Origin: Pavona decussata
Taxonomy: Eukaryota
Length of the DNA stretch: 64,000 nucleotides
Direction of reading: 5' to 3'
Assembly: GCA_977016875.1 (NCBI GenBank)
Contig: CDRNST010000144.1
Coordinates: forward strand, 2,852,001 to 2,916,000
Part shown: positions 15,501-57,800 of the stretch, piece by piece
Layout of the letters: each line of letters begins with the position of its first letter
Numbering within the stretch: position 1 is the stretch's first letter
Notes under the pieces: generated by a model
The model's input: only the letters and a program-made list of their open reading frames with translations
The model's database searches: none
What the model was told of the DNA's origin: nothing
Made by a program: the position numbers and the translations under genes

Positions 15501-18500
15501 TAAAAAAACTCGGTATATTTTTGTGTTGAACCGGTACCGCTGACCAGGAAGGACGACGGACGTCATGTAAAATAGATTCAAAAACCAGCGCTAGAGTGGT
15601 CCAAACGAAGTGAAAGGAAAATGGTGAGTGCTGGTCAGTCTTCGTGTTATATCTGCAATGTCATTGGCTGAAGAGAGTTAAGACAGCTAAGACGAAGTTG
15701 AAGTAGCGTGTTCCCTAATCTATATTACAGCTCCGAAAAGAACAAAAGAAGGCTGAATTAAGTGTGAGCCAAAATGGCGGCAAATTTGAGAGTTTTCGTA
15801 AATTAATAAAAAAACAAACAAACAAACACACTTTTTATCCAAATGGCGAATTTTTTTAGTTTTGCAGAACTTCTTTGTGTACCGTTTTAATTCAGATGAG
15901 AAGATAAAAAAAAAAAAAAAAAATCATGGAAACTTTATTATTTTTGCAACAGGGGAAACCACAATGTGGGACTATGCCTTCTAATACAGATGTATTATTG
16001 CAGAGTTTATGACTTTGCAGGAAAACCAAGGGCTATTGAAAATCAGAACGAAAATTTAGGATAACCACCGTTTTTTAGATATAATTAAGCAACAATAATC
16101 TAAAAAAGCTTTAACATACATAACAATACATTATTTTTTTTCAAATTTAATTTTGATACCTCCGAAGAATGAGAGTGGCTACCTCCAAATTTTCTTTTCG
16201 GATTTCAATAGCCCTTGCTAAAATCTATTTCTGCAAAAATACCTTTGAATTATTAGGCACCTATTAAGAAATCAGGATTTGTCAGACAATCCCGAAATAC
16301 GCAGCACGCAGTCGCAGTAGCAATAGGAGGCACCACCCTTAAATTTCCTGATCGAAAGTCAGATGCATTAAACACGTGAACTGGACAACAGCGCTTGCAA
16401 AAATTGTTTATTCATATTGCTCTCATGCTTATTTGACACCGGATTTAAACAGGAAGTTCCGGTATAAAAGGGGCCTGGCCAGGCCATTCTAACCTTCAGT
16501 TGTCAATCAACCATCGGGGCGTAAACAACTGACAAACAACATGTGCCTTTTTCTTAGGCTTTTATGTACTGATAAAATCGGCTTAGTTTTCATAATAATC
16601 CTTGTTAAACATATTAGAACTTGATATCCGTTATATTGCTGTCGTGATATTATAATATTTTGAGGCATATTTTCCAGAGGACTTTTGAGGCAACAACTTG
16701 CCACCGACTGAACAGCGTCGAAATTAGCATCTCACGCCCACAAAGGTGTAAAATGCAGGAGGGGCTTACCCTTTTATAGCGGAACTTCTTGTTTAAAGCA
16801 CTACCGTTCTCCTACGTTAGTAAAACTTAAAAATTAACAGAGTTTTAATCTTTGACTTAACTAAGCTAAACCCTGTGAATTGTAACTACTTACTGTCGCA
16901 GTTGATTATAGAAGCATTCCAACTTCCAGTAGACAGGCACAATAACGTGTTCTCATCACTGGGCAACTTATAGCCATCTTGGCAGCTAAATGTGCACTCA
17001 TCGCCAACAACGCTGGCTTGATCTTGTAGGCAGGTGTTCGGGGAGACGTTGGTGCCAGTTGTTTCAATCAGTTTTGGGCAGGTCTTAACTAAAACAATCC
17101 ATTATTAACACATTATCGATTATTTATAACCATCCCCTTAGAAGAACATCCATTTAAGGCGATAAGCATATCTCACATTGCAATTAATGAAAAACATTTG
17201 GACTAGAATTTTGGGTCATGTTGTGAAATATGACCAAAATAATTTACCTGAGCTAGAGACTTAGAATAAAACTTTAAAGCAATTATGTTGACTCAACACA
17301 TGAGGAATAGAGATAATACGAAGAGAATTGTCCTGATATTTACAACCAAAATAATATTTCTAGCATTGCGGTCGTCATAACTGAAATATTCTACAGGCAT
17401 TGGAATTTGTTTTATACAATTCACGTACAATTGGAATGCGCAAGATTCTGTGATTTTGCCTGACAAGCACGATCGGCTTCAATAACATTCCTGGAAAAGT
17501 GTGTGTCGAGGGAGTTCATAACAATGATGCTTTTGTGAACGTTGGAAATTACCATACGAGAAAAACATTAAATACCGCATACTAATAAGGAGGAGGTTTC
17601 ATCGGATATAAACCACTGCACGTGATGTTTTATCGACCATTTGATAGGTCAATGGGTTTATGAATTATGAATAAGTTTTTGAATAACGGATAAGGGTTTA
17701 GTTTCTAAAGAAACTATAGTGTCCCAGTTGTCGGTGGGGAGAAGAGACGGACGTTTGGTTTCTGTCAACAGAGTTCAAAAGGTAATTTGGCCACCGTAAA
17801 GAGATTGGAGTGCTGACGTTTCGAGCGTTAACCCTTCGTTAGAGCGAATCTGTTCGCGATTACCTTATAAATTCTGTTGATAAAACCAAACATTGATACA
17901 GTTATAAAGGGTTTTACAGAGTAAAGTAACACCGATAACTAGGTGCACGTTACGTTGCACATTCTGTGGTATCTGAACTCTCGAAACTTTAATTTGAACT
18001 CTCGTATGATCTAAAAGTGTTTGGTACCTCGTCGCGGATATTTGGAAGTCGTCAAAAGTGTTCATGGGTTTTCAGAAAATGGCCTCAAGCACTCAAATTA
18101 CTGGACAATCTTCCGATCTTTTTATTTTTAGAAAACATCCCAAACGCTGTAATGATGAACCTTACAACATGCTCTGAAAGTTGTTTGTGGCCATGAGAAA
18201 AAATTCCAAAAAACGAGAAAAAAAATCCAAAAACGACTAAAACACGTTCGCGAAATAAGACAAATTGAGGAAAATCTTCTTTAGATTTCTACTCTTTCCA
18301 AGTCACTTACAACTTGAGTGAAATTTTCATGACGGAGACATATATTTTATAGTCATGAGTTAAACTAGTATGAGATTGTTTCCTGTGGTGTACCGGCAAT
18401 ATTTTCCTGGTGCTGGCTTGATTTTGCTTAGACTAAACTCTCGAATACCAGCCACTCAGTGGATTTTTAACAAATATTCCACGAGCGCGCGTCGGATATG

Positions 18501-20198
18501 AGATGATAGATAGCCAACGAGCCGCGTAACGCCGATTTGGCTATAATCATCCCATATCCAACAAGCGTGAGTGGAATAATTGTTTTATTGAAAACAATCA
18601 AGAAATATTGCTAGATTTTGCTGATTTAGCTTTGCAAGATAAATAAGAAGACAATTTAATGGTCTCTAGTATTCGGGCATGGTATAATGGCTCACATACC
18701 ATGGCCGCTGAGCCAATCGTTCGAATTGCATTATACCTTGATCCAGTTTTTAATAATTAGTGGTATAAAGCTGAAGGGCACTGCCCTTGTGTAATTTAAC
18801 CTGAAAGGTTTTGCTTAAGTTACAATGTTTCTGTACCTTTGCACTTGTATTTTTCATTCGCTATTGGTAAATATCCAGCATTACACGTACACTCGTACCC
18901 CGGTTCATTGTTTTTGCAAGTAGTGCTTTTTGCGTCACACTGGTTTGAGCCATCCGCACATTCATCAATATCTAAAGAGAAAAAAGAAATTATCAAGAAA
19001 GAGGCCTTTATTTTGTTCTCGCTTTGGGAGCTGATTGGGAAGAAACGAAGCATGGCAGCCGTCTTTAATTTCGTCACTTGAACTTGGTAGACAGATTATT
19101 AGGCACAGAATTGATAAATGTTAACACTTATTTACAATAAATTTGTGCCTCTAAAGTGAATCTATACAAATTAAAAATATCACACATTAAAACAGTAAAA
19201 AACAGGTGTAGAGTTAATCTATAACACTTAAAAATAGCAACAGCAATTATAAACAGGTTAAAAAACAATATAATACATAACATATCACTGAAATCTACAT
19301 GCGTCGGACCATTAATTTGTAGAAAAAAATAAAAATAAAAAAGACTTCGAAAAAAAAGACCTCTACCATTATTTTAAAAACCTTTTTAAGGCTGAGGTAA
19401 TGGGCAAAAGTTTTGGGATACGCTAAGAACATAACTTGCTTAAAGTTTAAATACAAACGTCTAATAAAATGGCTGCCCAATTTGCTTCTCGTTCTGAAAC
19501 ACTTTTTATAGGTTTCCTGGACATAGCCGCATTGATTTAAGGAAGTATTACACCATCCAACTTTAGACTATTTTAAACACGGAACCGCATTATAAAAGGA
19601 ACCTTAGCCTGGCCAAGCCACCGGTCATTTCATTGTACACACTGAGCTGTGAACATCGTAGGATTCGTGCGGCATGATATAATAATAAAAATGACGGAAT
19701 AAATTTAAAATTCGTATGCGTATTTACCTCGTGATTTTCTTATTTGTTTTTGCGGCTCAGTTACAACATATTTTGTCCAAGATATTCTTTTAACAGCTAA
19801 GATTATTTTTTCAAGACTCGTTTGACTTTATTTTTTGAAATATCGATTCCACAACATTTACTTCCAACTTGCTCACTATGTCCGCCATCCCCCTTCATTG
19901 ATGTGACGTTGAAGGTGTGACTGTATGACAATGCTTTCAGGTTCAAATGGCCGAAAAAAAAGTTTCAATGTCAGCCTGGTGTTTGTGATTGCACGACCAT
20001 TGTGGTCACAACGCCTTCATTATGAAATGGTAGGTTTCAATACCAAGCGATTATATTAACGTGGTAGTTTTTTGCACGTTGTTTTTTGGGAAACCGGCTT
20101 TAATTTAAAAATTTTTAGGAGAGAAAGCAAACAGATCCATTAGCAGCAAACAGAATCATTAACGCCCTATTCTCTTTCTCAGGCTAAGGAGAGAAAAC

Positions 20199-20268
<70 letters not shown>

Positions 20269-23200
20269 TTAATATTTTTTTAAATAATAATAATAAAATC
20301 TTTATTACAAAACCTCAATTAAAATCCTATTAACAATCAACCTGCTGTTACAAAAAATCCAATTAATTCATCAAGACTCTATTCATTCTCAAATTCTAAA
20401 AAATAGAAGTAACTTAACCTTGCTTGGAATNNNNNNNNNNNNNNNNNNNNNNNNNNNNNNNNNNNNNNNNNNNNNNNNNNNNNNNNNNNNNNNNNNNNNN
20501 NNNNNNNNNNNNNNNNNNNNNNNNNNNNNNNNNNNNNNNNNNNNNNNNNNNNNNNNNNNNNNNNNNNNNNNNNNNNNNNNNNNNNNNNNNNACCAGAAGG
20601 AAAGTAACATGTTTACTGTCTACATAGTACATAAAGGTATAAGATAATTATGCTGTTCACCTTCACAAGTCAGTTTGTCGGGCTTAAGCTTATATCCGTC
20701 GTTACAGGAACAAAAGTAGCTACCATTGGTATTCGTACAGATGTCCTGGCATCCACCCTTAGCGAGTGAGCATTCATTTATATCTGTTGAATTTAATTAT
20801 CAATACAAATTTAGGTGAATATGAATCATCGAGGTTTGAGCTCTCTAAATAACTGCTACCTTAGTTATAGCAGTGCGACTCTGGCAATGTCGTAAAAAGA
20901 CAGATGTGTTATATTCACTCGTCCTAGTGGAAAGAGAAGGCAGGAAGTGCTCGAGTTAAGTTTGAACAATCAAACGTTTATTTTTAAGGCAAATACCACC
21001 AAGCGTCCTGACTTTTATGCAGCAATTTGGTACAAAAGTTCATTGTTCACGGGACGTAATGTTTCCTTGACAACGACATGTGGTAGCCATGCCGAGTTCT
21101 GTGAGATTTTGAGTTTTCTTACCTGAAAAAGTGAATTTTATCTTAAATCTTAGATTTTTATTCTATCTCAGTGATTATTTATTGGCTTTAATTTTTAAGG
21201 TTTTGGAGAAATCCAGAAATTTTAAGACGGCCGGTTGAAAATGGCTGCTATGTAAAACAAACGACGAAACTGTCCTAGTTTAATTATTCTGAGGGTATTT
21301 CTTTTGCCATCTATATCACATGGACCTTGTTTTTCAAGGTCTTGGTGCTTGCTGCGGAGGGTGGGGGGTGGGGAGCAGGGATTGAGGGCAAATAACTTCA
21401 ACAGCATTAGAGCTATTACAGTGAGTTCGGAGAGTACAGATTATTAGAAAAATATTTCTTCGAGGTCCACAAAACGGGAACAGAATGAAACGTTTTAATT
21501 TGACGTGGTAGGTTCATTATTATTTCTAATCACCCTTCATTTTGTTATTTTCCAAAACCTCGGAAAACCATCAAAATTAAACCACTAATAATAAAAGCAA
21601 AAACAAACGCCGAGAACTGATATAAATACTGTAGCATTAAAGTAAACAAAGAAGAAAACTTTTCTCTCAAAGGTTAAGCTAAAACATGATGTTTTATGGA
21701 AATATCAAGTCACGTGATCAGTGTCATTTTGCCTATGATATTGTGAGACAACTCGAGTGCTTACTTTTCCACACCCCATGCTAAGGCACTGTGCAATAAT
21801 TACCTGGATGGAGGGGTTGGGAAATGGGTAACATACAGCTCAAAATTAAGTTACACCCCCGTCTCACTAAGCAGAACTTAATTTTAACCTCACCCGTCAC
21901 CTACTGGTAATATTAAGGTCAAACTCCCCTCTCCCTTACTTCCCTAATTTATGTGTTGGATGTCTTCCTAGGTACAAAAAGTACTTCAAATGACAATAGA
22001 AATTTTTTTTGAGATGCAAGAACGAGGCAATTAAATTAAGANNNNNNNNNNNNNNNNNNNNNNNNNNNNNNNNNNNNNNNNNNNNNNNNNNNNNNNNNNN
22101 NNNNNNNNNNNNNNNNNNNNNNNNNNNNNNNNNNNNNNNNNNNNNNNNNNNNNNNNNNNNNNNNNNNNNNNNNNNNNNNNNNNNNNNNNNNNNNNNNNNN
22201 NNNNNNNNNNNNNNNNNNNNNNNACTCTTCAATTTATAACTACAGAAATTAGGAAGAACATTGATAATTTTGTTCACGATATAGAGAGAGCGGTGATAAA
22301 ATTTTCTGCCACTTTTCCAATAATGTTTACAGCAAAGTCTTCAAAATCTAGGAATTCAGTGCCAAAGCCAATAGGCGCAAGATTCATGCTGCAGCGGCGA
22401 GAAAGAAGAGAGCCTGTTTCATATTTTTGTTTTTGGGGTGCTCACCAATTGACAAACGAGTATGAACCAGTGATATATGGCATTCAGCAAGTGAAAGGAA
22501 TTGTTGATTATGAAACTCTTTACATCTGCAAGAAGCAAAGCTTCCTTAAGAGTTCTTGTGAACTCAAGAAGCTTTGTTGAAGAATCTGAAAATGTGATTA
22601 AGGAGTTCCTGTCTGATTGAGCTTACGTTGGCTTACTATCTAAGTTCAATTTATTGCTATTAAATTCAACGGTTGGGTTTTCAATTCTTTTTAATTAAAA
22701 TGACATGTAGGATTCTACATTGGCATCTTTCTTTTTCACTGAATAACATCATAGTACAACTTTCACAACGCTTAAGGGTTCCTGCTTCATCAAAACCTGG
22801 TGTCAATAAAGTAGCACTGTTTTAATACCTAACAGAGGTATTCCTTTCCCACTGCAGGACACATAGGAAGATAGAAAATAATCAGCCAGTTCAGAGATCT
22901 GAAAACACCTGGAGTTGATATTTTCCCAGTTTAATTCCAGTGTAAGTAAGTATAAATATCTACTAGCCCTTCTACCACTTTTCCAGTTTGTGAAAAAGAG
23001 TGAAAAAGTAATCCCCCCATGTATGTATTAAAATTTACATCCAATCCCCCTCTCTCTAGTTGTGATTTTCCTCTATTCCCCCCACCCCCTCCCTCTGGTT
23101 TCCCAACCCCTCCCCCTCCAGGCAATTATTACATAGTCCCTAAAATAGGGTTATGGAATGTTCGCTCTTACCAATTAAAAAAAAGGAATAATAAAAGTAA

Positions 23201-26200
23201 AACATCACCGAAATGATTCTTAAACCATATCAAGAGAAACAAACAAACAAAAATGAATTAGTTACCTTGGCAGATCTTTTCGGTTTCAGAGGCAGTCTTA
23301 TACCCAGAAGGACAAGTGCAGATAGCAGTACCATTCAGGTTCTGACAAGTGTGACTACATCCATAGTTATTATTTTTGCATTCGTCGATATCTGGATAGA
23401 AAAAGTAAATATATCAATATGAGATTGACCACATGGAATTTTAGTCAAGCAGCGACTTAAATAGTCATATTTTGGAACTGCTGGCTCTAGGTGAAATATA
23501 GAATAAACAAAAGCACTATTTAACAAGGTTCGACACTGAAAAATTATCAAGTATCTTCCTTTAACGTTCATAGTACACCGGTGTTCAAGGGCAAATGTCC
23601 TTAAAAAATCTTGAGACTTTCTTGTAGGTACCCTCAGGTATAATAGATGATTTGTGTAGCTTTAGTTTCCCATTTCTGCCACTTGCTCTTTGTTCCTATT
23701 ATTGTTTGCTGCTTATTCTTTCATTCTTTCGTCCGTGGAAAAAAGTTCACCAAAATTGTATGATAATTAAGATCACATTTCCAAACCTCCTTCACGGTAG
23801 TGATTTCCTTTGTTTTCTCTTTATGAATTATTAAAGAGTTTGAGAACGTGAAATCAAAAATGCTGGGGCGAGGGAGATTTTAAATATATTGTTCTATGTT
23901 GAGGACAAGGTTTTTGTTGGTTACCGTGGTAGATAGATTAATAATAAAGTGTATTGCAGTTTGTCTCACGATGAAGTCACTTGAGATGTAGATCGCAACG
24001 TTTCGACTTCTTACAGCCAATCTTCTTCAGGCGATGGGGTCAACATTTATATCACTGAGGCACCATTTATATCACTGAGATCGGCTGTGATTGGTGCATT
24101 TCGATCCTCCATTGTTCCAACCTCTCACTGGAACAATGGAACACTGGATGATCGAAATGCGCCAAGCACAAGAAATGGTGCCACGTAACAGTCGAAACGT
24201 CGCGATCTACATCTCAAGTGACTACATCATGATACAAACAAAATAGACTTTATTGGGTTTGACGAAGAAGAACGCATTCATTAGAGTTAAGGTTGTATGG
24301 GACAATCAAAGATCGAACGCGTTTGGCATCCCCCGAATATTTTGCTGGGGTGGATGACATCATCACCAACTTGGCAAAGGAGCCAGATGTTGGGATCGAG
24401 ATCATCGAGCGTACTCCTTGATCTTTGATTATTTCTAATTTTAAAGCTTTTTTAAATTCCTGTTGCTAAATTCTCTCTAAAAATGCGTGGTTTCCCCCAA
24501 TTTTCCTCTTGGAATTTAATAACCCTTGCTAAGCACTGCTTTTTCCGAACAGCCATAATCTGTGCAAAAATACCTCAGTATTAGTAGGCACTGTCCATGA
24601 CTGCAATGTATTTCAGGAATAGGGGTTTCATGATAAATCATCGAGGCTTGTTTGATGATTGAAAATAAATATTATTTCACCTTTGCACTGGAACTGTGTG
24701 TGTGGTTCAAATCCATTGCGGCAGTTGCACTCATAACTTCCAACGTTATTAACACAGACTGTCGAGAACGTGTCACATTCATCGGTCTGTCTTGAACATT
24801 CATCAATATCTGCCAATTATAACAAATCCAAAATTAACAGAAATAATGCACAATTATTGACTGCGTGGAAGGGACGCACTGGGAACATTCTCATGTGGCC
24901 TGACTTGACTCAGTACGCTCGCACAGTGTTTGTCAGCCATCATAAGAACAAATCAAAAGTTTCAAAGTTTGATCCTCCGAAGTAAATTGCAGTTCGCACG
25001 CAGAATAGTAGTGTGATAGCGCACATTTTGAAATACATTGCGAAGAATTCTAAAATAACATAACCCCAAGAGACGTACGGTCAAACTGACTACGTGTAGA
25101 AACTAGGTTTTTTGTCCCGTCATTATATAACATTTGGACTATCCCGGCATCTAAGCAAAATATAACGCTCATATACACGATTTTGCTATTTTTAAGATGT
25201 GGTTTGTGGGTGTCTGGATTTCTTTTTGAACACAAAAACAACATTTAGCAGCAAAAGATCACACGATCGCGCGTTAAAACTTACCTTTGCAATTTAATGC
25301 ATTGTGTCTTTCATATCCAGAGAGACAAGGACACCAGTAGCTTCCTATCGTGTTATTACAGCTGGTAGTGCCCTTGTTGCAGCTGTCTAGTTTTTCCGCA
25401 CATTCATCGATGTCTAAATAAATTGGAAGGAACAGTATAAACATCTTCCACGACTATCGGAGGTCGCATTATCTTTAAAATATTCTTACATTAACGTCAG
25501 AGACTTCAGAGGCTATATTGAAAGCTCGGTCATAAATGAAACCAGTTTACTGGCGACACCTAGTAAGCAAAGTCTGTTCGTCTTAACTTGAAGTCCCCTT
25601 GATAAGACGCTCGGTGGCCACGGAAGCGTTTTAGGGTCTTTTAGGAAAGTTTTCAGCCATGCACATTTGGAAAAATCATGCATACAGAAGAAACTTTTTC
25701 GTTCCTAATGTCCCGTCTAAAGAGCGCTATATAATATATAGGCTGCTCAGATCCAATTGGTTCAAGTCGTCCGCCCCAAGACCGCCTGTTTCCACCGGCG
25801 GTGTGGATGACCTTCCTCTCGTCAAGGATGCATTTAATTCATGTGTTAGGGTTGTTGGCCAACCTATAAAACCATCCAGGAAGAAGTTTCTTATCATCAC
25901 ACCAGTTTCATCTATTCCATGTCAAAGTCTGCTTACGACACCTGATGAGTAACTGAATACGATGGCCTTAATTTTTTCGGTTACCTTTCACTACATTAAT
26001 ATTTGCAGTCATAAGGGACCTGAAGGGAACAAAACGGCTAGGACAGCAACAAAATCCGTTAAAAAGTGACAGTCCAACTCGATTCAACTCATTTAGATTG
26101 CAAAACGTTGCTTAAAGAGCTGAATCCTTACAGATGTTCAAACTCAGAGATAGAGAAAAAAATTATACCGACATCTGAGTTCTCGTCAAACTTTAAATGT

Positions 26201-29200
26201 GGTGATTTTTTTCTTCACTTTTTTCGTTTGACCGAGAACGGTAGAGAACTGTGCCAAAATCTAAACGTAAGTGCAATTCTTTTGCCGGTTTGTTCACAAA
26301 ATCCTCTTCGTTTACGTCTTTCTTATTTGCTTTGCCTATTTGGCTGCTTGCACCGAAACGTTATTAGTTTAGCACTGGCGTGACATAAGATCGATTTTCA
26401 ATTGAGTTTTTTAAAACAAAAGCCAAAGTAGTTACTCTGGTTAGTCGCAACAGACGCGAAAATGTAACGAACCAATCAGAAATGAAAGCAAATACGTGTA
26501 GCCGGCTCGACGAGTCATGCTTGGATATATATATATTTTTTTTTTGCTTCCAATTTCTTTAGAGAGTGGCGCGTGTTTTGCTAACTAATCGCATATCACA
26601 GCATGGCAAAATCAAACCATGGCAACCTTGTGAGCACCAACCACCCAGCGCTAACGCGAAATTATTTTCGAGACTCAGTTGAAAACTGCTCTAAAATATC
26701 AATGGACATTTTACGCAGACTGTTACAATTTGTTACCTTCACAGGTCTTTTGATCATTTCCAAGTCTGTACCCGTCGTTCATGCATTCACACGAGTAACT
26801 GCCGGGGCTGTTTTTACAAACTTGGTTACATCCACCGTTATTTACATCGCATTCGTTATCATCTTGAAGGAATGAAACCAAAAGATGTTGATTAATGTGG
26901 CTTCTTGAACGAAAAAGAAACAACGTTGACCATGATCATTTCGTATGTTAAGAAATAAAATAGACTTTAGAGTTTTAATAATCGATATTTATTTAACAAA
27001 GCTTTTCACTTGATTACTTAATTATTATTATGTTTATTATTAGATATTAGAAAGGAGAATCCGTGAAAATATAATTCAATGCCAGTTAAACAAGAAGATA
27101 ACCTTCGCAGGGACAAGCTTGCTGAGAGAAGAAGCAAATAGCATTCGTTTCCTTTCCGAGCAGGGACCGAGGAGCGTTTTTCCAATCGGTGGAAAAGGGG
27201 GGAGGGGGGGGGGGGGGGGGAGGGGGCTACTTCACAGCCCCTTCTGTTTGAGGGACGTTGAGTTTCAGTGGCATGCTACCGCGGTAAACGTTTCAAAAGA
27301 TTGCATTCAGATGGCTGAAAATGCATATCAATAGGTTATTGAAGTGAACTGAACTATAAGAAGACGACAAACACAATGAACATGGCAGCAATTCAAATGA
27401 CAGATCTGACTCGGTTAATGTTTTTCCACGCGGTTTTCATTTCGTTGGGAAAACCCATTCGCCACATCGACAAGTCGAATCTTATATTGCCTTACGTGTG
27501 TGCTATATTGCCACATGATTAAACCTTTGTTAATTTATGTTTGCTCGCAACCATATTTTCACTCTTCCTTCCATCGAGAATGACTACCTTTCTCCGAGTT
27601 GCCCTTTTAGCTCTAACCATGCGTCTCTCGTGAACGGCACGCTTCTTTTAACCATTTTCAAAAAAATATCGGAAAAGCAGTTAATGGCGGCATCCTTTAA
27701 AAGTTTGAGTTGCGAATAACCAGTTTTTAAATCGTCAGGAGTAGTTCAGAAGCCTATCAAAATAATCTCCAAATTGAAATGTGCTCCAAAACTTTGTTGT
27801 TCAAAACGTTTTTGGATAGCTGACACATTAAATCTAGTGCCTCAACTAGATTCTTCGATATATTTCCTAAGGAGTCACAGGGAATGAAGATGTCCCAGTT
27901 CCAACCCCAAAACTTGATACTTAAGGTTCTGTGATGGAAGCTTGAATTTTTTTTTTTTTTTTTGCGCAGGACTGTTTGATAGAAAGTTGCAAAAAATGCA
28001 TCGTTGCTAATCGAGATGAGCACATCCTTCTTCATTTTGGCGTCACGTTGCCCACCAGCTTCTGACATGCTGACTTTCTGCAACGTCTCCGATAGTTTGT
28101 CTGTATGGGGAAACTTCTCTGACCCGGATTTAATCCAAAGAAAAAGTCAAACTTTTTTAGTTGCGCTTGGCACCTAACAATTCTACCTCGAATATCTGAT
28201 TCTAGTCTTGTTTCAAGGCAACCATTCTATAGTGTTAATTTTTGAAAACAGATCACTCGCGAGAATTTGATACATTTGGAATTTTCTCTCCACTCTTTGG
28301 AAGCGTTTGTTCGCTTCTCGCGCTTGTCTCCTTTTACATTCCATACTTTCACGAGCTTCCGCGCTCTCGACGAGGAAACAATTGCTACGCAAACTAGGGC
28401 GTTGAATACCTTTAGTCTTGTTTTAAAGTGTCAGGGTCTATATTAAGATTCGGGGTACTCATTGGAGAGATGCAATTATTAAGCTCCTTCAAGCAAGTTT
28501 TGCAAATCTTGCTGTGGAGGAAATGTCGACGAGCAAAAGTTTGTTCAAAGTTCATAGTGGTAAAAAATAACGCACGGAAGCAATAGAGCGTTCAATTTCA
28601 GTGGCATATCTACATTTGCACATATCGAGCAAGATACAGCGCTCAATTCTACAATTTTATACGGAGAGATTCAATAGAATTGTTGGATTACTTCTGCTAC
28701 CGTATTTTCAGGATATTCAATAAGAGAACTTATATTGAATTTCTTTACCTTTGCAGCTTTTTTTGTCAGGCTGTAGGGTGTATCCCTGGTTACAGCTACA
28801 GGTGTAACTGCCATTGTTGTTGTGACAGTTTTGATCGCATACACCCGGGTTGTCACACTCGTTGACATCTGCAGCATAATGCATAATAGGCAGTGTTAGT
28901 GACCAAGATGCCCTTGCCTATGTCTAAATGGTGGTACAGCATATTTTTGTGAGCCATGAATTTCGGTGTCAAATGTGCAATAGCTGATTTCTTCCTCGTA
29001 AAATGTGATTTTATGCAGTTTCCTCTGTTACTACAAGAGTTTAATATGTTGCGATTTTTTTTATTTCACGTAAAATGATAAATTGGATTTTATCTAAAGT
29101 GACCGAGTTTAACTCCATGACTCCTGTACTGTGTACCTTCCTTTTAATACCACCGTGTACAATGGCATGGATGTTTGCCATGTATGTATCTCTTTATGTT

Positions 29201-32200
29201 TCATGTTCCTTATCTGAAATTTCATGGCTGTTGGCAAAGTATTGCTTTGGGCGAGCTATGTTTTCTGGAAAGGGACACAAACAGAGAAACATCTCCCAGG
29301 AAAAATTTTGACCATGGATGTAGCCGTTTACCAAAATCAAGCACAGTAAGCTGGGAAAAACCAAATATGCCAAAAATTATAGAGACCTTCGGATTCTAGT
29401 ACGAGTGCGACTACGAATACCAGTACTAAGTACTAAGAACAGATATAAGCTATAAAAAGTGTCTTAATGGGGGAGAGGTACCAATAATTAAAAGAAAAAT
29501 CAAAACTTTTCGGGCTGATTNNNNNNNNNNNNNNNNNNNNNNNNNNNNNNNNNNNNNNNNNNNNNNNNNNNNNNNNNNNNNNNNNNNNNNNNNNNNNNNN
29601 NNNNNNNNNNNNNNNNNNNNNNNNNNNNNNNNNNNNNNNNNNNNNNNNNNNTCACCTTGTGGTACACTACACACCTACGCGACTCAAGATTTGCATTTGA
29701 AAAAAAAAAAAGAAATTGTAGTGATTCGCTCATGCAGATAAGTGTCGACGGTTTTGTGGCCAAGCCGAAATACCATATGTGGAAATAAGTGGTCTTCTAT
29801 GAAATATTGAAATTTGTTGCTCGAAGTGATATTTTTGAGCTTGTTTACCAAGCAAATATCTTGTTACGAATGTTTGGTTTTATCAACAGAGTTGGCCACA
29901 GTACACTGAGAAATTCGAGTGCTGACGTTTCGAGCGTCAACCCTTCGTCAGAGCGAATCTTGCCAGTTTGGCTTTGAAAACAAAAAGGAACAGCTAGTTT
30001 TACGGCCTAGCTTCCACATGTCCCCTGTTGCTTAGTGGTAGATATGTAGTTCTCTAAGGTTATAAATAACAACATTCTAATAATGCATCATCATTTACGT
30101 ATAGAGAGAATTGGTACATTCCATGCAGACATTACACCTATTGTTTTAACAACAAATAACCTAAACAATATGAATGAATCCGCAATACCTACCTATGCAA
30201 GTCTTTTTGTCCTGTGCTAATTGATATCCCGCTGGACAGGCTAAAATTAAAGCATACCAAGTTAATCGAATAAATAAATTGAGTTGTTGTTTGCTCATTC
30301 ATAACGTTGGCCATTCATAACATTTGCTTCCAGCCGCCCCCACCAATACCCATTCATTTGAAGCAGTCGGAGATGCCAGATAATTGGTAACAGAAAATAT
30401 GGGATAGTTGTGTCTGAAAAATGTTAATTCAACCCGGAAAAAAGAAAATTATATGCATTAGAAATACAATTGTTATGTTGTCTTTGTCTATTAAGCTATA
30501 TGAATGCACTCTATACTACCAAAACTACGCTAATTGCTTTTTGTTTGCACTGATGCTAAACTGAATAATACCCTACTATTGTAGTAAAAAAAAAGTCACA
30601 AAGTTTGCTGGCAAACGTCCCCGCCACGGTCTAGATATGGATAATTTGCTAGTGGCAATATGTATTTTATTTATTTAGTACCCTGGAAGTGTTAATATTA
30701 AGGAAATGCATATATGAGAATAAAGAAAGAAAACATACATACTTGGAACAGAGGTTGTTGGTGGTGCTGTTGTCTCTTTAAAAAATTTGAAGAAAAAGAG
30801 AGAAAAAATAAATTAATCAAATAGCAGTCTTCTGCTCATCTGGGTAAGGGGCAGTCGTGGGTTTGGTTTAAGGAAAAGTGTATAACAACAAATATATAAA
30901 CAAAAAATGCATATGCGGTTTGGTGATCTGCTGTATATTTGGGTCTGAAAAAAGAAGGGGAGAAAAAAACAAAGCAAATAGCGATAAAATGAAATAAAAT
31001 AGCAATCTGCTTCAACATTTAAATTTATTGGCAAATGGTTTTCGTTAAAGATCAGTAGTCTAAGAAGGTTGATTTTAAGAATGTGCATCTAAAACAAACA
31101 ACATAGCAAGGTCACGAAAAAAAGAAAACAAAAGAAAACAAAACAAACTCGACAGAAAATACATACGTTTTGTTGTGGTGGCTGGTGGTTGCGTTGGCTC
31201 TTTAAAATAAACAGGAAAGAAACGATGAGTAAAGCAAATGGCAATCTACCACTGGACGTAGCGAACGTAGATTTATCACTAACCTCCCTCTCTGCATCGC
31301 ATCATCTCTCTTTTAGGGCTTGATTTTATAAGTGCAGTAATTAACCTCTACCTTCATTTATTTGTTAAACCCTGTGGGACGTTAAAGAACCCGCAAACTA
31401 ATCGCAAAGAGTAGGGCATGGAGTTCCCAGTGTGCTGGTCTGGTCTTTGTGCTATTTCATGATTAGTAGTAATGTAAACCGCATTTGAATATATGCATAT
31501 AGAAAATGCGGTGGATAAATACCATTACCATTACCATTACCATTAAATAAGGACGATATTATCGATAAGAAAATAGTTTCACTATCTCAGGCCACTCTTT
31601 ATTTTGTCGTTAATGAATAATTGTCAGTTGCTAAACAAAAAACGGGGCGCTAAAAAATCTCACTACTTATTGTGATGAAGATTTACACCAATCAGTTGCA
31701 GTTTAAGAGAACAGCTACTCAAAAAGAACCTTGATGTTTTTTTTTTATTTTCGTCATATCTGTTACAAGAGAAATATTACTCCATTTATTAACAAAGGCA
31801 TTTTTTTAGAGGAGCAGGTATGGCGCCGAAGAAAGCACTTGCCTCCCACCAATGTGGTCCAGGTTCGATTCCCGGACTCGGCAATATGTGGGTTGAGTTT
31901 GTTGTGGGTTCTTGTCCTTGCTCCGAGAGGATTTTCTCCTGGTACTCCGGTTCTCCCCTCTCCTCAAAAACCAACATCTCCAAATTTCAATTCGATCTGG
32001 ATTATTGTCAAGCACTTTATCATGATCCCCTGGCTCGGGAGACTGCGCAAGCACTTCCCGCGTTATTGAAATTAAATTTGATTTATTTATTTGATGTTCC
32101 TCACACCCCTAAATATCTTCAATGCAACTTAATATAAAACCGGGTATTTTTCCATCCTCCTATCGCGATTCAAACTCTCATCCTAACAAAAGGTAAACTA

Positions 32201-53838: not shown

Positions 53839-54837
53839 TTAGACATGTTCCAAAGTAATCTCATCTACTCTGACCCTAGCTGACCTCGTTTTCTGGGTTG
53901 TTTGACGAGATCCTTTATCGAGGTGTCCGTGTGATTTTCTGCCCAACATTTGTAAAAATGCTGACCTTATATTGGTACTAAAGGCGATGTACAACCATGG
54001 GTTGATGGCACTATTTGCGTGGCCCAACCAGAAAGCCAAATACATCAGGATATCTGGCAAGTCAATGGTAAATCTTGTTACTGCCCAAAAAAGGTTAAGC
54101 GCCTGCCCGGGAAGCCAGCAAATAGCAAATGTGATGACGATGATAATAAGCATTCGAACTGCCCTCTTCTTTGAGATCTCTTGCTGATGTTGCTGATTTT
54201 CATTTAACTCATTCCCGGGAACGTGGCGAAACCATATTGCGTGAGCTGTTTTGCCGTACAGAATGGAAATGACAACCAAGGGAACAAAGTAGGTGACGAT
54301 GAAAAGGTAGAGCATAAAACCACGAATGTTTCCCGGAGGATAAAAGCCGTAATTGCCGCACTGAGACGTTTTCTGATTGATCTTGTAATAGAGTGGAACG
54401 ATGGACATCAAAACCATTGACACGATCCAGATCAGCGGTGTAATGTACTTGGATTTTCGAAACCAGGGAGTACTGCCCATCAAAGGAAAGATGAATGCGT
54501 AGAATCGATCAATCGCCATGACTGTCAAGCAGAGGACAGACGCCATTACTGTGGTATGAGTGATAAATGGGATTGCTCTACACGTGATTTCTCCAAGTAA
54601 TCCGGGTATCATCCACTTGAAATCACTGTTTAAATCGGAAATGCTCGACGGCATCATGAACACGGTCACCATTAGATCAGCGACGGCCATGTTGACAAAC
54701 ATGAAACTTGTTAGTGATTGCACTGCGGGTCTTTTCCACACGATGTAAATGATGATAATATTTCCCAGCAAGGCTGCAAGCATCGTCATCGCGTACATCA
54801 CGGTGAGTATGACAATTTCTGCGTCACCGAGAGCCAT
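53839..54837 (-). CDS. intronless class A (rhodopsin-type) GPCR, neuropeptide-receptor-like, 332 aa
   Basis: Seven hydrophobic segments; GN (TM1), NMAVADL (TM2), Cys at top of TM3, DRF, TM4 Trp, FAICWLP, NSAINPWLY; first in-frame ATG at 54837. Confidence 0.95.
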   Translation of the reverse strand: MALGDAEIVILTVMYAMTMLAALLGNIIIIYIVWKRPAVQSLTSFMFVNMAVADLMVTVFMMPSSISDLNSDFKWMIPGLLGEITCRAIPFITHTTVMASVLCLTVMAIDRFYAFIFPLMGSTPWFRKSKYITPLIWIVSMVLMSIVPLYYKINQKTSQCGNYGFYPPGNIRGFMLYLFIVTYFVPLVVISILYGKTAHAIWFRHVPGNELNENQQHQQEISKKRAVRMLIIIVITFAICWLPGQALNLFWAVTRFTIDLPDILMYLAFWLGHANSAINPWLYIAFSTNIRSAFLQMLGRKSHGHLDKGSRQTTQKTRSARVRVDEITLEHV

Positions 54838-57800
54838 TTTTAAAATTGAAATTATATCTGTGAATGTCAATTAATCAAATTTTAGTATTTTTGAAGGTAA
54901 TAGCCCTGATTGGAACCATTATCATACAACTGACCAGTAAAATCGAGTTAGTACGGTTTGTTTAACGGGTATGATGAGTCAATGGGTCCGCTTCTTCCCA
55001 ATTGATCATATCTACCTACAGTATCTGAACACTTTTTTAAAGTAATAAATGGGAGAAAACGTTTTGAAGAGTAGACATACAACATTTTTAATAGCGAGAT
55101 GCGGTAGAAAGACCGTGCTATATTTATTCGAAGGAGTGTTTCTAAACCCTTGCCATCTTCACACTTGGTAACAATCGGATGCTAAAATCTAACAGTGCGA
55201 AAGCAACGCTTTGTCTAGGGCCGCAGATTATTGTTCCTTAATCATTGACAGGGCTTATGAAAGTTATAGAAATAATCAAACGAACTTTGCCCAAAGCGGA
55301 ACATGCAACCTTCACTCATTTTGTAGCGGAATGAAAGCAAAAAAAATTAGATGTTATCGAAACGGCTTGAATATGGCCGGTGTTGTTTTCAGTTCAGTTG
55401 ACAATTGCTTTCTCTTTAAAAAATTCCCCTTGTATATCGAAGGTACTGATAAACGTTGTTCAGTAGGTGAATGTGCACCACAACATGAAACAGTGTTTAC
55501 TTCGTTTTCTAATCCTGTTATTCTATGCTTAATATTTCATTCTGCTTTCCGCGGATGAAATATTTTGCACTGAACATGTATTCGCCCTTATGTTTCAACT
55601 TAGCAACGTTCTCAGCTTAACCGCAACGCGACTGTGCGAGTCGATTCTCTTTCCCGTAAACGGAGGCCCTAAAAACTGGCATGCTTATTTTTATTTCGTT
55701 GATACCCAACATGAAGTTTTCTTGGTGCGTCCGAGTTCGACTTTCTATTTTTGGCACTCTTTACTTATACACGAAAGCTGAGCAGACATGGCTTTAAATG
55801 TGTTTAGTTGAACGCGAATGGAAGATCAATCCACCTCACCGAAAAAGATTGTCACTGATACATCTACCGATAATTCTTAGCGTACGAAAACCCGAAAGGG
55901 TCTCATGAAAATGCACAGAAAAGTTCTAAAAACTTTAAACATAGCTTACACAATGTTGTTGGTAAAGGGAAAATTTTGCAGAAACGTGAATATTATATGT
56001 TGCTATTGGTTGCGTTAGGTTCGCATGCAAGGCATTATGGTAAATGTGCAGCCGCGATATTAAATGAGATAATGATAGTACGGTAAAAGATTATCTCATT
56101 GTCCTGGTTTGTCATAATAAGCCCCATTAGTCAGATCGTTCAGTCATCAGTCATTTTGCAAATACAATGCAGGACAGCTTTTTTATTACTTTGTGTCCTT
56201 TTTATTCAGCCTAATAGCGAGCTTAATATTGGCAGAATTCACCATTGTGTGCAAATCATTTTTAACTCAGCTTAGAAAGAAAGCAAAAATAAATTTAAAA
56301 CAGTCAAATAAAGGTCTACTACTCGTTTAAATCGTTAGAATACGACTCTTTGTTTTCTTCTGTTGAAAACGACAACACTACCGACAATTTCATTGGCTGC
56401 TGTTTGTATGTTAGAAAAAAACTTTCATTTAAAATGCTCCATCTGTTTACTCTTGTTCCACTTTACTTTGACAAGTAATCCACCTTATCGTCTGTAGGAG
56501 GAGGAATAGCAAAACTGCCTGAATATGTTGGGTTGTTAGTTATATTGATCACAGTCCTTTGTTTTTTTTTTATTGTGACAAGTCCTGTTTTTTTTGTTCT
56601 TCGTATGAACTTGGAATTGTAACGCAAATCCTAGTGATGCTTTCTTTGACTGCCTGGTTGTTACTCAGAGCGTAGTGTCGTCTCTGAGGGAGCCTGGCCT
56701 GTCAATTCCGTTTCTTGGGTTTTTCAGTTCATCGTTGTTCTTTTAGTGAAGAAAAATTTTGAACCACTTCAGTTGATATGGCGGTTTCTCAACCAAATGT
56801 AACAGAGTTTTTTGCATGGGAATTTAGCTCCGTGGGTCAGCGAGAGGTGCCCCATTACCTTCGAGATTTTGTTTTACATCAAGTGGACCCAGACCTTCAA
56901 GGAACGTAGTGTTTATTGCAGATCTTGACTCATTCTGTTACATGCAGAACTCGAGAGCTTTTAGTGAAGAACATTTCTCATATAAGACCCGAAGCCAATA
57001 GTATTTCGACAACTTAGTTTCATTTGCGTAAGCTTAGCAAAAGGAGGAAATTATAAATATAAATTATTGTTCTCACCTTTACAAACTGAAGCTAATTTCT
57101 TATTCGAATGGAGAGCAGGTGTTCAACACCTATGTAATTCACTTGACGGTTACAAAGGCTGCGATATTTCCTAAGCTGAGTGTGATCTACTTTTACTGAA
57201 AAATGTCCCGTAACAGCTAAAAAGTGATCTTGTTCAGGTTTTGACTTATTTGTCCACTGTTGCAACATAGCCACCCTGGATATTGAAAATAATTTGAAAG
57301 ACAACATAATATGCACGATGCCTTCCTTTTAAGTTACTCAAATGAACTAGATTGACAGGTATAGCAGTCGAAATTACTTTGAAAACGTCCGAATTCTTAG
57401 CAATATTAACGTTTCTTGATAGTGTTAGGTAAAATGCAGAAGCAATTAGCCCATATTACCATATTCGAGCAGTGTTACAATGAATATTTCCAGCATTTTT
57501 TTGGGGTTCTCGACATTTTGCTTATATCCAAGTACTATCACAAGATAACACACCACCTGAACATTCCCAACTAAAATCCGGGCAAACTGAATTAGCGACT
57601 CTTGGTTTTTTGAATTTTTTTTTTCTTTTTCAATAAACTATTCCCAAACAGAACTAATCAACATCTTTACTGTATGCCCCCCCAGTTTTCTATTCAATGT
57701 TGAGTAGAAAGCATGTCGATATCACGCACATCTTTGAACATGATAAGGGGGAACGATCTCGAGGATTGCTGGGGGTGCGGAGGAGGGGGAGAGAGCGAGG

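Follow-up and report, generated by a model that had tools for sequence, protein, structure and literature searches.

The question raised by this locus is whether several small ribozymes carried by one pre-mRNA can act on each other. The 64-kb window analysed here (contig CDRNST010000144.1 of the coral Pavona decussata, positions 2,852,001 to 2,916,000) contains a large cell-adhesion gene with three hammerhead ribozyme motifs in its introns. A first-pass annotation had proposed that these motifs cleave as intron-to-intron dimers, affecting the skipping of EGF exons or releasing circular RNAs. This proposal was found to be unsupported rather than refuted. The motifs very probably go back to three separate old insertions of abundant non-coding retroelements, which now reside in the introns as inert passengers.

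Reading of both strands yielded three hammerhead motifs in the window, all located on the minus strand and numbered here as sites 1 to 3 by increasing position (Table 1). Each of them displays an extra A after A9, followed by the G10.1-C11.1 pair, and in each a palindromic ACGU (15.2-16.2) replaces the hairpin of helix III. The presence of the motifs, their strand and their tiny GAAACGT(C/T) element are thus in agreement with the first-pass annotation. The conserved core (C3-U4-G5-A6-N7-G8-A9 ... G12-A13-A14 ... U16.1-H17) is present in sites 2 and 3 and broken in site 1. In site 3, the 5' strand of stem I (29959-29952) is followed by CUGACGA (29951-29945), the extra A (29944), helix II (29943-29932, 4 bp with a 4-nt loop), GAAA (29931-28), CGUC (29927-24) and the 3' strand of stem I (29923-29912), which carries an ACUC bulge; the predicted cut lies between 29924 and 29923. 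Site 2 has a 5-bp stem I (AUCGC/GCGAU), CUGAAGA (24030-24024), the extra A (24023), a helix II GAUU/AGUC (24022-24005, 4 bp with a 10-nt loop), GAAA (24004-01) and CGUU (24000-23997), with a predicted cut between 23997 and 23996. The core of site 1 reads CUAACGA, with G5 changed to A at 17840, and one distal pair of stem I is gone at 17807. Because G5 belongs to the invariant catalytic nucleotides of hammerheads, site 1 should be catalytically dead, its would-be cut lying between 17815 and 17814. The earlier count of three minimal hammerheads therefore holds for sites 2 and 3, which have an intact core, and not for site 1.

The motifs are not chance look-alikes. A descriptor consisting of the core, the palindromic 15.2-16.2 element and helices II and I of 3 bp or more each was run on both strands of the window and returned exactly sites 1 to 3, with zero hits on the plus strand. 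Block shuffles of the window gave an expectation of 0.005 strict and 0.025 relaxed matches, versus two strict matches in the real window. Across the 602-Mb genome, the pattern CTGANGA-A-G...C-GAAACGTH has 1,364 matches (656+708), versus one (0+1) for the reversed control, and among the matches listed the helix II sequences are highly varied yet still pairing. An accidental resemblance to the hammerhead core could draw on the silence of the Rfam hammerhead models (Hammerhead_1/3/HH9/HH10/II), which gave no match at the gathering score in the whole window or at E<=10 in 17000-31000. This silence is attributed here to the missing helix III hairpin, and the accidental reading, already refuted by the window shuffles and the genome control counts, has a vanishingly small probability.

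Evolution of the paired positions also stands against such an accident. The copies belong to two repeat families, called A (sites 1 and 3) and B (site 2). Between them, compensatory double changes affect two pairs of helix II (GGGC/GCUC versus GACU/AGUC) and each of the three proximal pairs of stem I (GCU/AGC versus CGC/GCG), giving five double changes in total. In the alignment of family A, 90.8% of the paired cells can pair, versus 26-43% with slid partners. Inside family A, compensatory change is scarce, with only two cells. A joint MAFFT alignment of both families misaligned their 5' halves and was kept out of the pair counts.

Two repeat families behind the motifs, as first annotated, were recovered both by genome copy searches and by comparison within the window. 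A first-look search of the genome yielded at least 1,537 candidate copies of family A and at least 533 of family B. These numbers do not fit a domesticated single-copy hammerhead of the RECK type. The family A unit is ~105-163 nt long, begins exactly at the 5' strand of stem I and ends in an AC-rich tail; at the 5' end of its copies, an inverted copy is often placed head-to-head. Copies of family B stop sharply on the 3' side, ~175 nt downstream of where most copies begin to match, and their 5' extents vary, exceeding 1.1 kb at the longest among independent loci. Such a combination is characteristic of a retroelement with 5' truncation.

Insertions of Penelope-like elements (PLEs) are characterized by strong 5' truncation, a short tail and, next to the 5' end, an inverted 5'-truncated copy (Craig et al. 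2021, PMC8557442). The same anatomy is present in the window, where the direct copies of sites 1 and 2 are each abutted on their 5' side by an inverted 5'-truncated copy, an arrangement also found at many other loci of the genome. A possible AAACCCTT(T)AT target-site duplication surrounds site 1, its 5' side offset by ~10 nt, and is not relied on. The genome contains at least 933 candidates for the GIY-YIG domain, many of them as head-to-head pairs, the inverted arrangement expected of PLEs. Close pairs on opposite strands are found for instance on contig C78, at 6667729(-)/6669173(+), and on contig C240, at 394542(-)/401482(+). In the open reading frames (ORFs) upstream of family B copies, no Pfam domain of PLEs was detected. 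One of these ORFs, of 209 aa, gave no usable match in the ESM Atlas, with low recognition, and is probably spurious. Another (L063:1264-2508) encodes a G-protein-coupled receptor (GPCR) and was set aside as an unrelated gene. As the upstream regions of family B have no recognisable PLE domain, both families look non-autonomous, and an autonomous PLE partner is inferred.

Some further loci show how the families are arranged elsewhere. At L059 (G000:C213:463301-466458), the long-form tail of family A (...CAGTTTCTTTAGAA) runs straight into the start of family B in the same orientation, which suggests a nested or adjacent insertion of both families. Five family B copies (L041-L043, L046 and L055) lie in an apparent segmental duplication at ~2.99-3.18 Mb of contig C49 of the same assembly (G000), and two other loci (L061 and L064) have kilobases in common at 85-91% identity.

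The elements at sites 1 to 3 are further copies of an already known kind, closest to the minimal hammerheads of PLEs, and the first-pass annotation had rightly placed them among the minimal type I hammerheads of that group (PMC4209133, PMC6765202). The hallmarks described by Cervera & de la Pena 2014 (PMC4209133) are a base between 9 and 10.1, the G10.1-C11.1 pair and a palindromic 15.2-16.2; the same work reports many covarying hammerhead families in a single genome and a design for action as dimers. According to the review PMC6765202, which cites Lunse, Weinberg & Breaker 2017, the PLE minimal hammerheads are likewise built to act as dimers. For a stony coral, the group of Cervera & de la Pena (2020, PMC7229834) has reported over 6,000 hammerheads of type I, which belong to 16 families and are mostly of the minimal kind. 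The Pavona motifs share with those of PLEs the type I topology, the CUGANGA/GAAA/UH core, the extra base 9/10.1, the G10.1-C11.1 pair and the palindromic C15.2-G16.2 instead of a helix III hairpin, as well as the many divergent families per genome, the massive copy number and the abutting inverted 5'-truncated copies. They differ in having no ORF for a reverse transcriptase (RT) or GIY-YIG domain beside the sampled copies, in the family A unit of just ~105-163 nt that starts at stem I, and in the stable alternative hairpin that CUGACG and CGUCAG of family A can form. The intronic hammerheads of amniotes (RECK, CTCL, DTNB; PMC6155905) are likewise of type I and lie on the sense strand of introns, and a role in mRNA biogenesis or alternative splicing has been proposed for them. 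Unlike the copies found here, which are minimal multi-copy repeat relics with one of them mutated, they are single, canonical, provided with a real helix III and conserved across orthologues.

The host gene encodes a mosaic protein on the minus strand, with F5/8 type C, seven calcium-binding EGF, Sushi, HYR, ephrin-receptor-like and Ig domains identified exon by exon with Pfam. Expression was followed in Logan assembled contigs, which drop rare variants, of three same-species runs that behave as RNA. These contigs join 24809 to 25285, 25413 to 26737 and 26862 to 28749, with CT..AC on the plus strand corresponding to GT..AG on the minus strand, and the spliced contigs contain only constitutive exon joins. 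The gene is thus expressed and normally spliced. Because Pfam-positive minus-strand exons flank every motif on both sides and splicing occurs on the minus strand, the motifs are intronic and in sense orientation, as had been annotated. Three assembly gaps (20431-20591, 22042-22223 and 29521-29651) are clear of the motifs and of the EGF coding segments. Two contigs extend 775 and 2,323 letters past the compared stretch, and such extensions of spliced contigs occur on both of its sides; a single transcript across the gaps is consistent with these extensions, not proven by them.

The predicted folds argue against cooperative cleavage. At site 2, the direct and inverted copies of family B form a minus-strand foldback of 331 nt with a computed energy of -153.4 kcal/mol (23930-24260). 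Its arms (23959-24008 and 24190-24239) are 92% complementary and enclose a central hairpin (24086-24170). In this predicted fold, every base of GAAACGUU and of the 3' strand of stem I pairs with the inverted arm, which is transcribed before the hammerhead. The hammerhead-competent state of site 3, with stems I and II formed, reaches -5.7 kcal/mol, versus -16.6 kcal/mol for the minimum free energy structure, which pairs CUGACG with CGUCAG, i.e., the core with the cleavage-site segment. Within 366 nt of native context, this core-pairing hairpin has a probability of ~0.81 and the proximal stem I of ~0.001. A consensus-like family A copy elsewhere in the genome (L019) folds into the same hairpin, which would therefore be a trait of family A. 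An intermolecular dimer would be held by a single contact, the 4-bp ACGU helix, with -1.7 to -3.1 kcal/mol, and the partner sites are 5.9 and 6.2 kb apart. RNAcofold cannot represent a kissing-type helix III crossing stem I, and the monomer states and the bare ACGU duplex were compared instead.

These folds have some aspects of their own. In family A, the complementarity of CUGACG to CGUCAG spanning the cut site gives a stable rod-like alternative fold (29924-29951, probability ~0.8) that would hold the ribozyme inactive and could be a built-in switch or a hairpin for RT recognition. The foldback of site 2, a near-perfect long hairpin within an intron, is a potential double-stranded RNA substrate. 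Matches to Rfam microRNA models at this locus are weak (E 0.0017, far below gathering) and correspond to the centre of the family B foldback.

Neither the number nor the state of the three copies is exceptional. Among sampled copies, the core is intact in 14/30 of family A and 16/30 of family B. As about half of them are intact, two out of three in the window corresponds to the background. From the total of at least 2,070 copies, ~0.2 copies are expected per 64-kb window and the probability of three in one window is ~0.0015; over the ~9,400 such windows of the genome, more than a dozen clusters of three copies are expected, the copy counts being lower bounds. By chance, all three motifs would be in sense orientation with a probability of 1/8 and on one common strand with 1/4, so that the caution of the first-pass annotation on this latter value stands. 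The shared sense orientation is most simply explained by chance.

Family A insertions would accordingly account for sites 1 and 3 and a family B insertion for site 2, each family bearing a minimal hammerhead of type I, as is typical of PLEs and of the non-autonomous elements derived from them. During the cycle of the element itself, this motif probably functions within element transcripts that are multimeric or paired, as is suggested by the literature. The copies in the host gene would be passive passengers, lost with the excised intron: site 1 presumably dead, site 2 locked in a Penelope-type inverted-duplicate foldback and site 3 favouring a non-catalytic hairpin. For Xenopus genomes, a 2026 preprint (Li, Clavereau & Pollet, 10.64898/2026.07.22.740005) reports a relative avoidance of introns by retrozymes and their origin from PLE pseudo-long terminal repeats (pLTRs). 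Such avoidance fits copies that are parasites rather than regulators.

Three other readings have to be weighed against passive insertion. In the one originally put forward, minimal hammerheads of different introns pair through the ACGU helix III and cleave the pre-mRNA, altering the inclusion of the in-frame EGF exons or releasing fragments or circles. A single expressed gene carries all three motifs in sense orientation, the exons between them measure 126-129 nt so that skipping would preserve the frame, minimal hammerheads are regarded as working in dimeric form (PMC4209133, PMC6765202), and even a copy with a dead core might provide a partner with its ACGU strand. Of the three cores, however, only two are intact, one of them enclosed in the foldback and the other preferring its core-pairing hairpin, and the ACGU duplex is weak for partners ~6 kb apart. 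Minimal hammerheads are inactive as monomers and weak and slow even as designed dimers (PMC4209133), and for a PLE of Anolis no RNA-seq reads start or end at the hammerhead site, cleavage having required the element's protein (PMC11167929). Together with the constitutive joins in the contigs and an orientation that chance provides easily, these points make the model very unlikely. Its wider form, in which scattered sense-strand hammerheads, core-dead copies included, serve as mutual partners for a slow, structure-gated co-transcriptional cleavage that tunes in-frame EGF exons, is even harder to credit.

Slow residual self-cleavage of the intron by site 3, alone or with family A or B RNA in trans and with no consequence for the gene, is unlikely. 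Site 3 has an intact core, and its differences from the family A majority are all structure-neutral, leaving every helix pair complete and six of six CpGs kept. Family sequences also occur in the RNA-like contigs (bins 29760-29959). Slow cleavage of an intron need not upset co-transcriptional splicing, as known from experiments with ribozymes placed in introns. The folding and kinetic arguments raised against intron-to-intron cleavage apply here in the same way. A third possibility is that animal retrozymes release small circular RNAs from the locus. Metazoan non-LTR (long terminal repeat) retrozymes are elements of the same broad kind: they are non-coding, contain hammerheads and abound in a coral genome, corals express their circular RNAs (PMC7229834), and they are proposed to have arisen from PLE pLTRs as non-autonomous elements (PMC7229834; 10.64898/2026.07.22.740005). 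Retrozymes are, however, direct tandem units of 150-450 bp with canonical, efficient hammerheads that have loop-loop contacts, whereas each insertion here has a single minimal motif and its neighbouring copies are inverted. At sites 1 to 3, direct tandem repeats and a helix III hairpin are both absent. Production of retrozyme circles from this locus is thus highly improbable.

Several points weigh against inert insertion of Penelope-type elements. Nearest-neighbour folding ignores tertiary contacts, proteins, co-transcriptional kinetics and the intermolecular helix III. Assembled contigs cannot show RNA ends, so cleavage at either intact site may take place without being seen in them. The three copies lie within 12 kb, versus a mean of ~0.04 expected from the lower-bound counts. 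The hammerhead part of site 3 is better kept than its surroundings, with three structure-neutral changes in ~50 nt versus heavy indels downstream, which could be a hint of constraint or merely reflect subfamily differences. For the assignment to PLEs, finally, a direct sequence link to an element encoding RT and GIY-YIG did not emerge: no RT or GIY-YIG ORF was found beside the sampled copies of either family, and by coordinate comparison no family A or B match adjoins any GIY-YIG match listed.

The locus can be used as a calibration point. With 1,364 intact matches of one subtype in the genome, several motifs per gene, even on one strand, are to be expected, and as about half of the copies still look intact, intactness alone is no sign of function. 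To judge from the folding models, a hammerhead can become buried in a long intronic hairpin through a Penelope-type inverted duplicate, which may be a useful rule for judging like cases. If it were true, the cooperative model would connect ribozymes of retroelements with alternative splicing in a basal animal and turn Penelope-type repeat relics into splicing regulators; the present evidence gives no reason to expect this.

Table 1. Hammerhead motifs, repeat copies and host-gene features in the window.
Feature	Position	Strand	Basis or remark
Site 1, decayed family A hammerhead	17803..17850	-	Structure reading and descriptor scan
Site 2, minimal hammerhead, intact core	23992..24035	-	Structure reading and descriptor scan
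Site 3, minimal type I hammerhead, intact core	29912..29959	-	Structure reading and descriptor scan
Family A copy, long form, ~163 nt (site 1)	17688..17851	-	Repeat comparison
Inverted 5'-truncated family A fragment, unit ~63-105	17859..17894	+	Abuts 5' end of site 1 copy
Family B copy (site 2), 3'-terminal part of longer non-coding element	23890..24119	-	Repeat comparison
Inverted, internally deleted partial family B copy	24118..24255	+	Abuts 5' end of direct copy; without CUGANGA half
Family A copy, short form (site 3)	29866..29960	-	Ends at AC-rich tail near unit position 105; internal deletion
F5/8 type C	~35.9 kb	-	Pfam
cEGF	~30.2 kb	-	Pfam
Seven calcium-binding EGF segments of host gene	18823..28917	-	Stop-free segments, Pfam
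Spliced exons	24681/24707-24809, 25285-25413, 26737-26862, 28749-28870	-	RNA-like contigs
Sushi	~17.0 and 14.8 kb	-	Pfam
HYR	~12.7 and 10.6 kb	-	Pfam
Ephrin-receptor-like	~7.6 kb	-	Pfam
Ig	~5.4 kb	-	Pfam

Other repeats and genes are also found in the window. Two intervals (24160-24559 and 27160-27359) show a summed contig depth of hundreds to thousands in the RNA-like as well as the DNA runs, versus ~150 for single-copy DNA, and because of this very high depth they are considered to be other high-copy repeats. A fragment of one of these repeats (24441-24495) recurs in inverted orientation at 16059-16114. An intronless ORF of 343 aa on the minus strand (53842-54870) matches the rhodopsin-family GPCRs (7tm_1, E 6e-42); the GPCR ORF mentioned above, which is located on another contig and upstream of a family B copy (L063:1264-2508), is similar to it.

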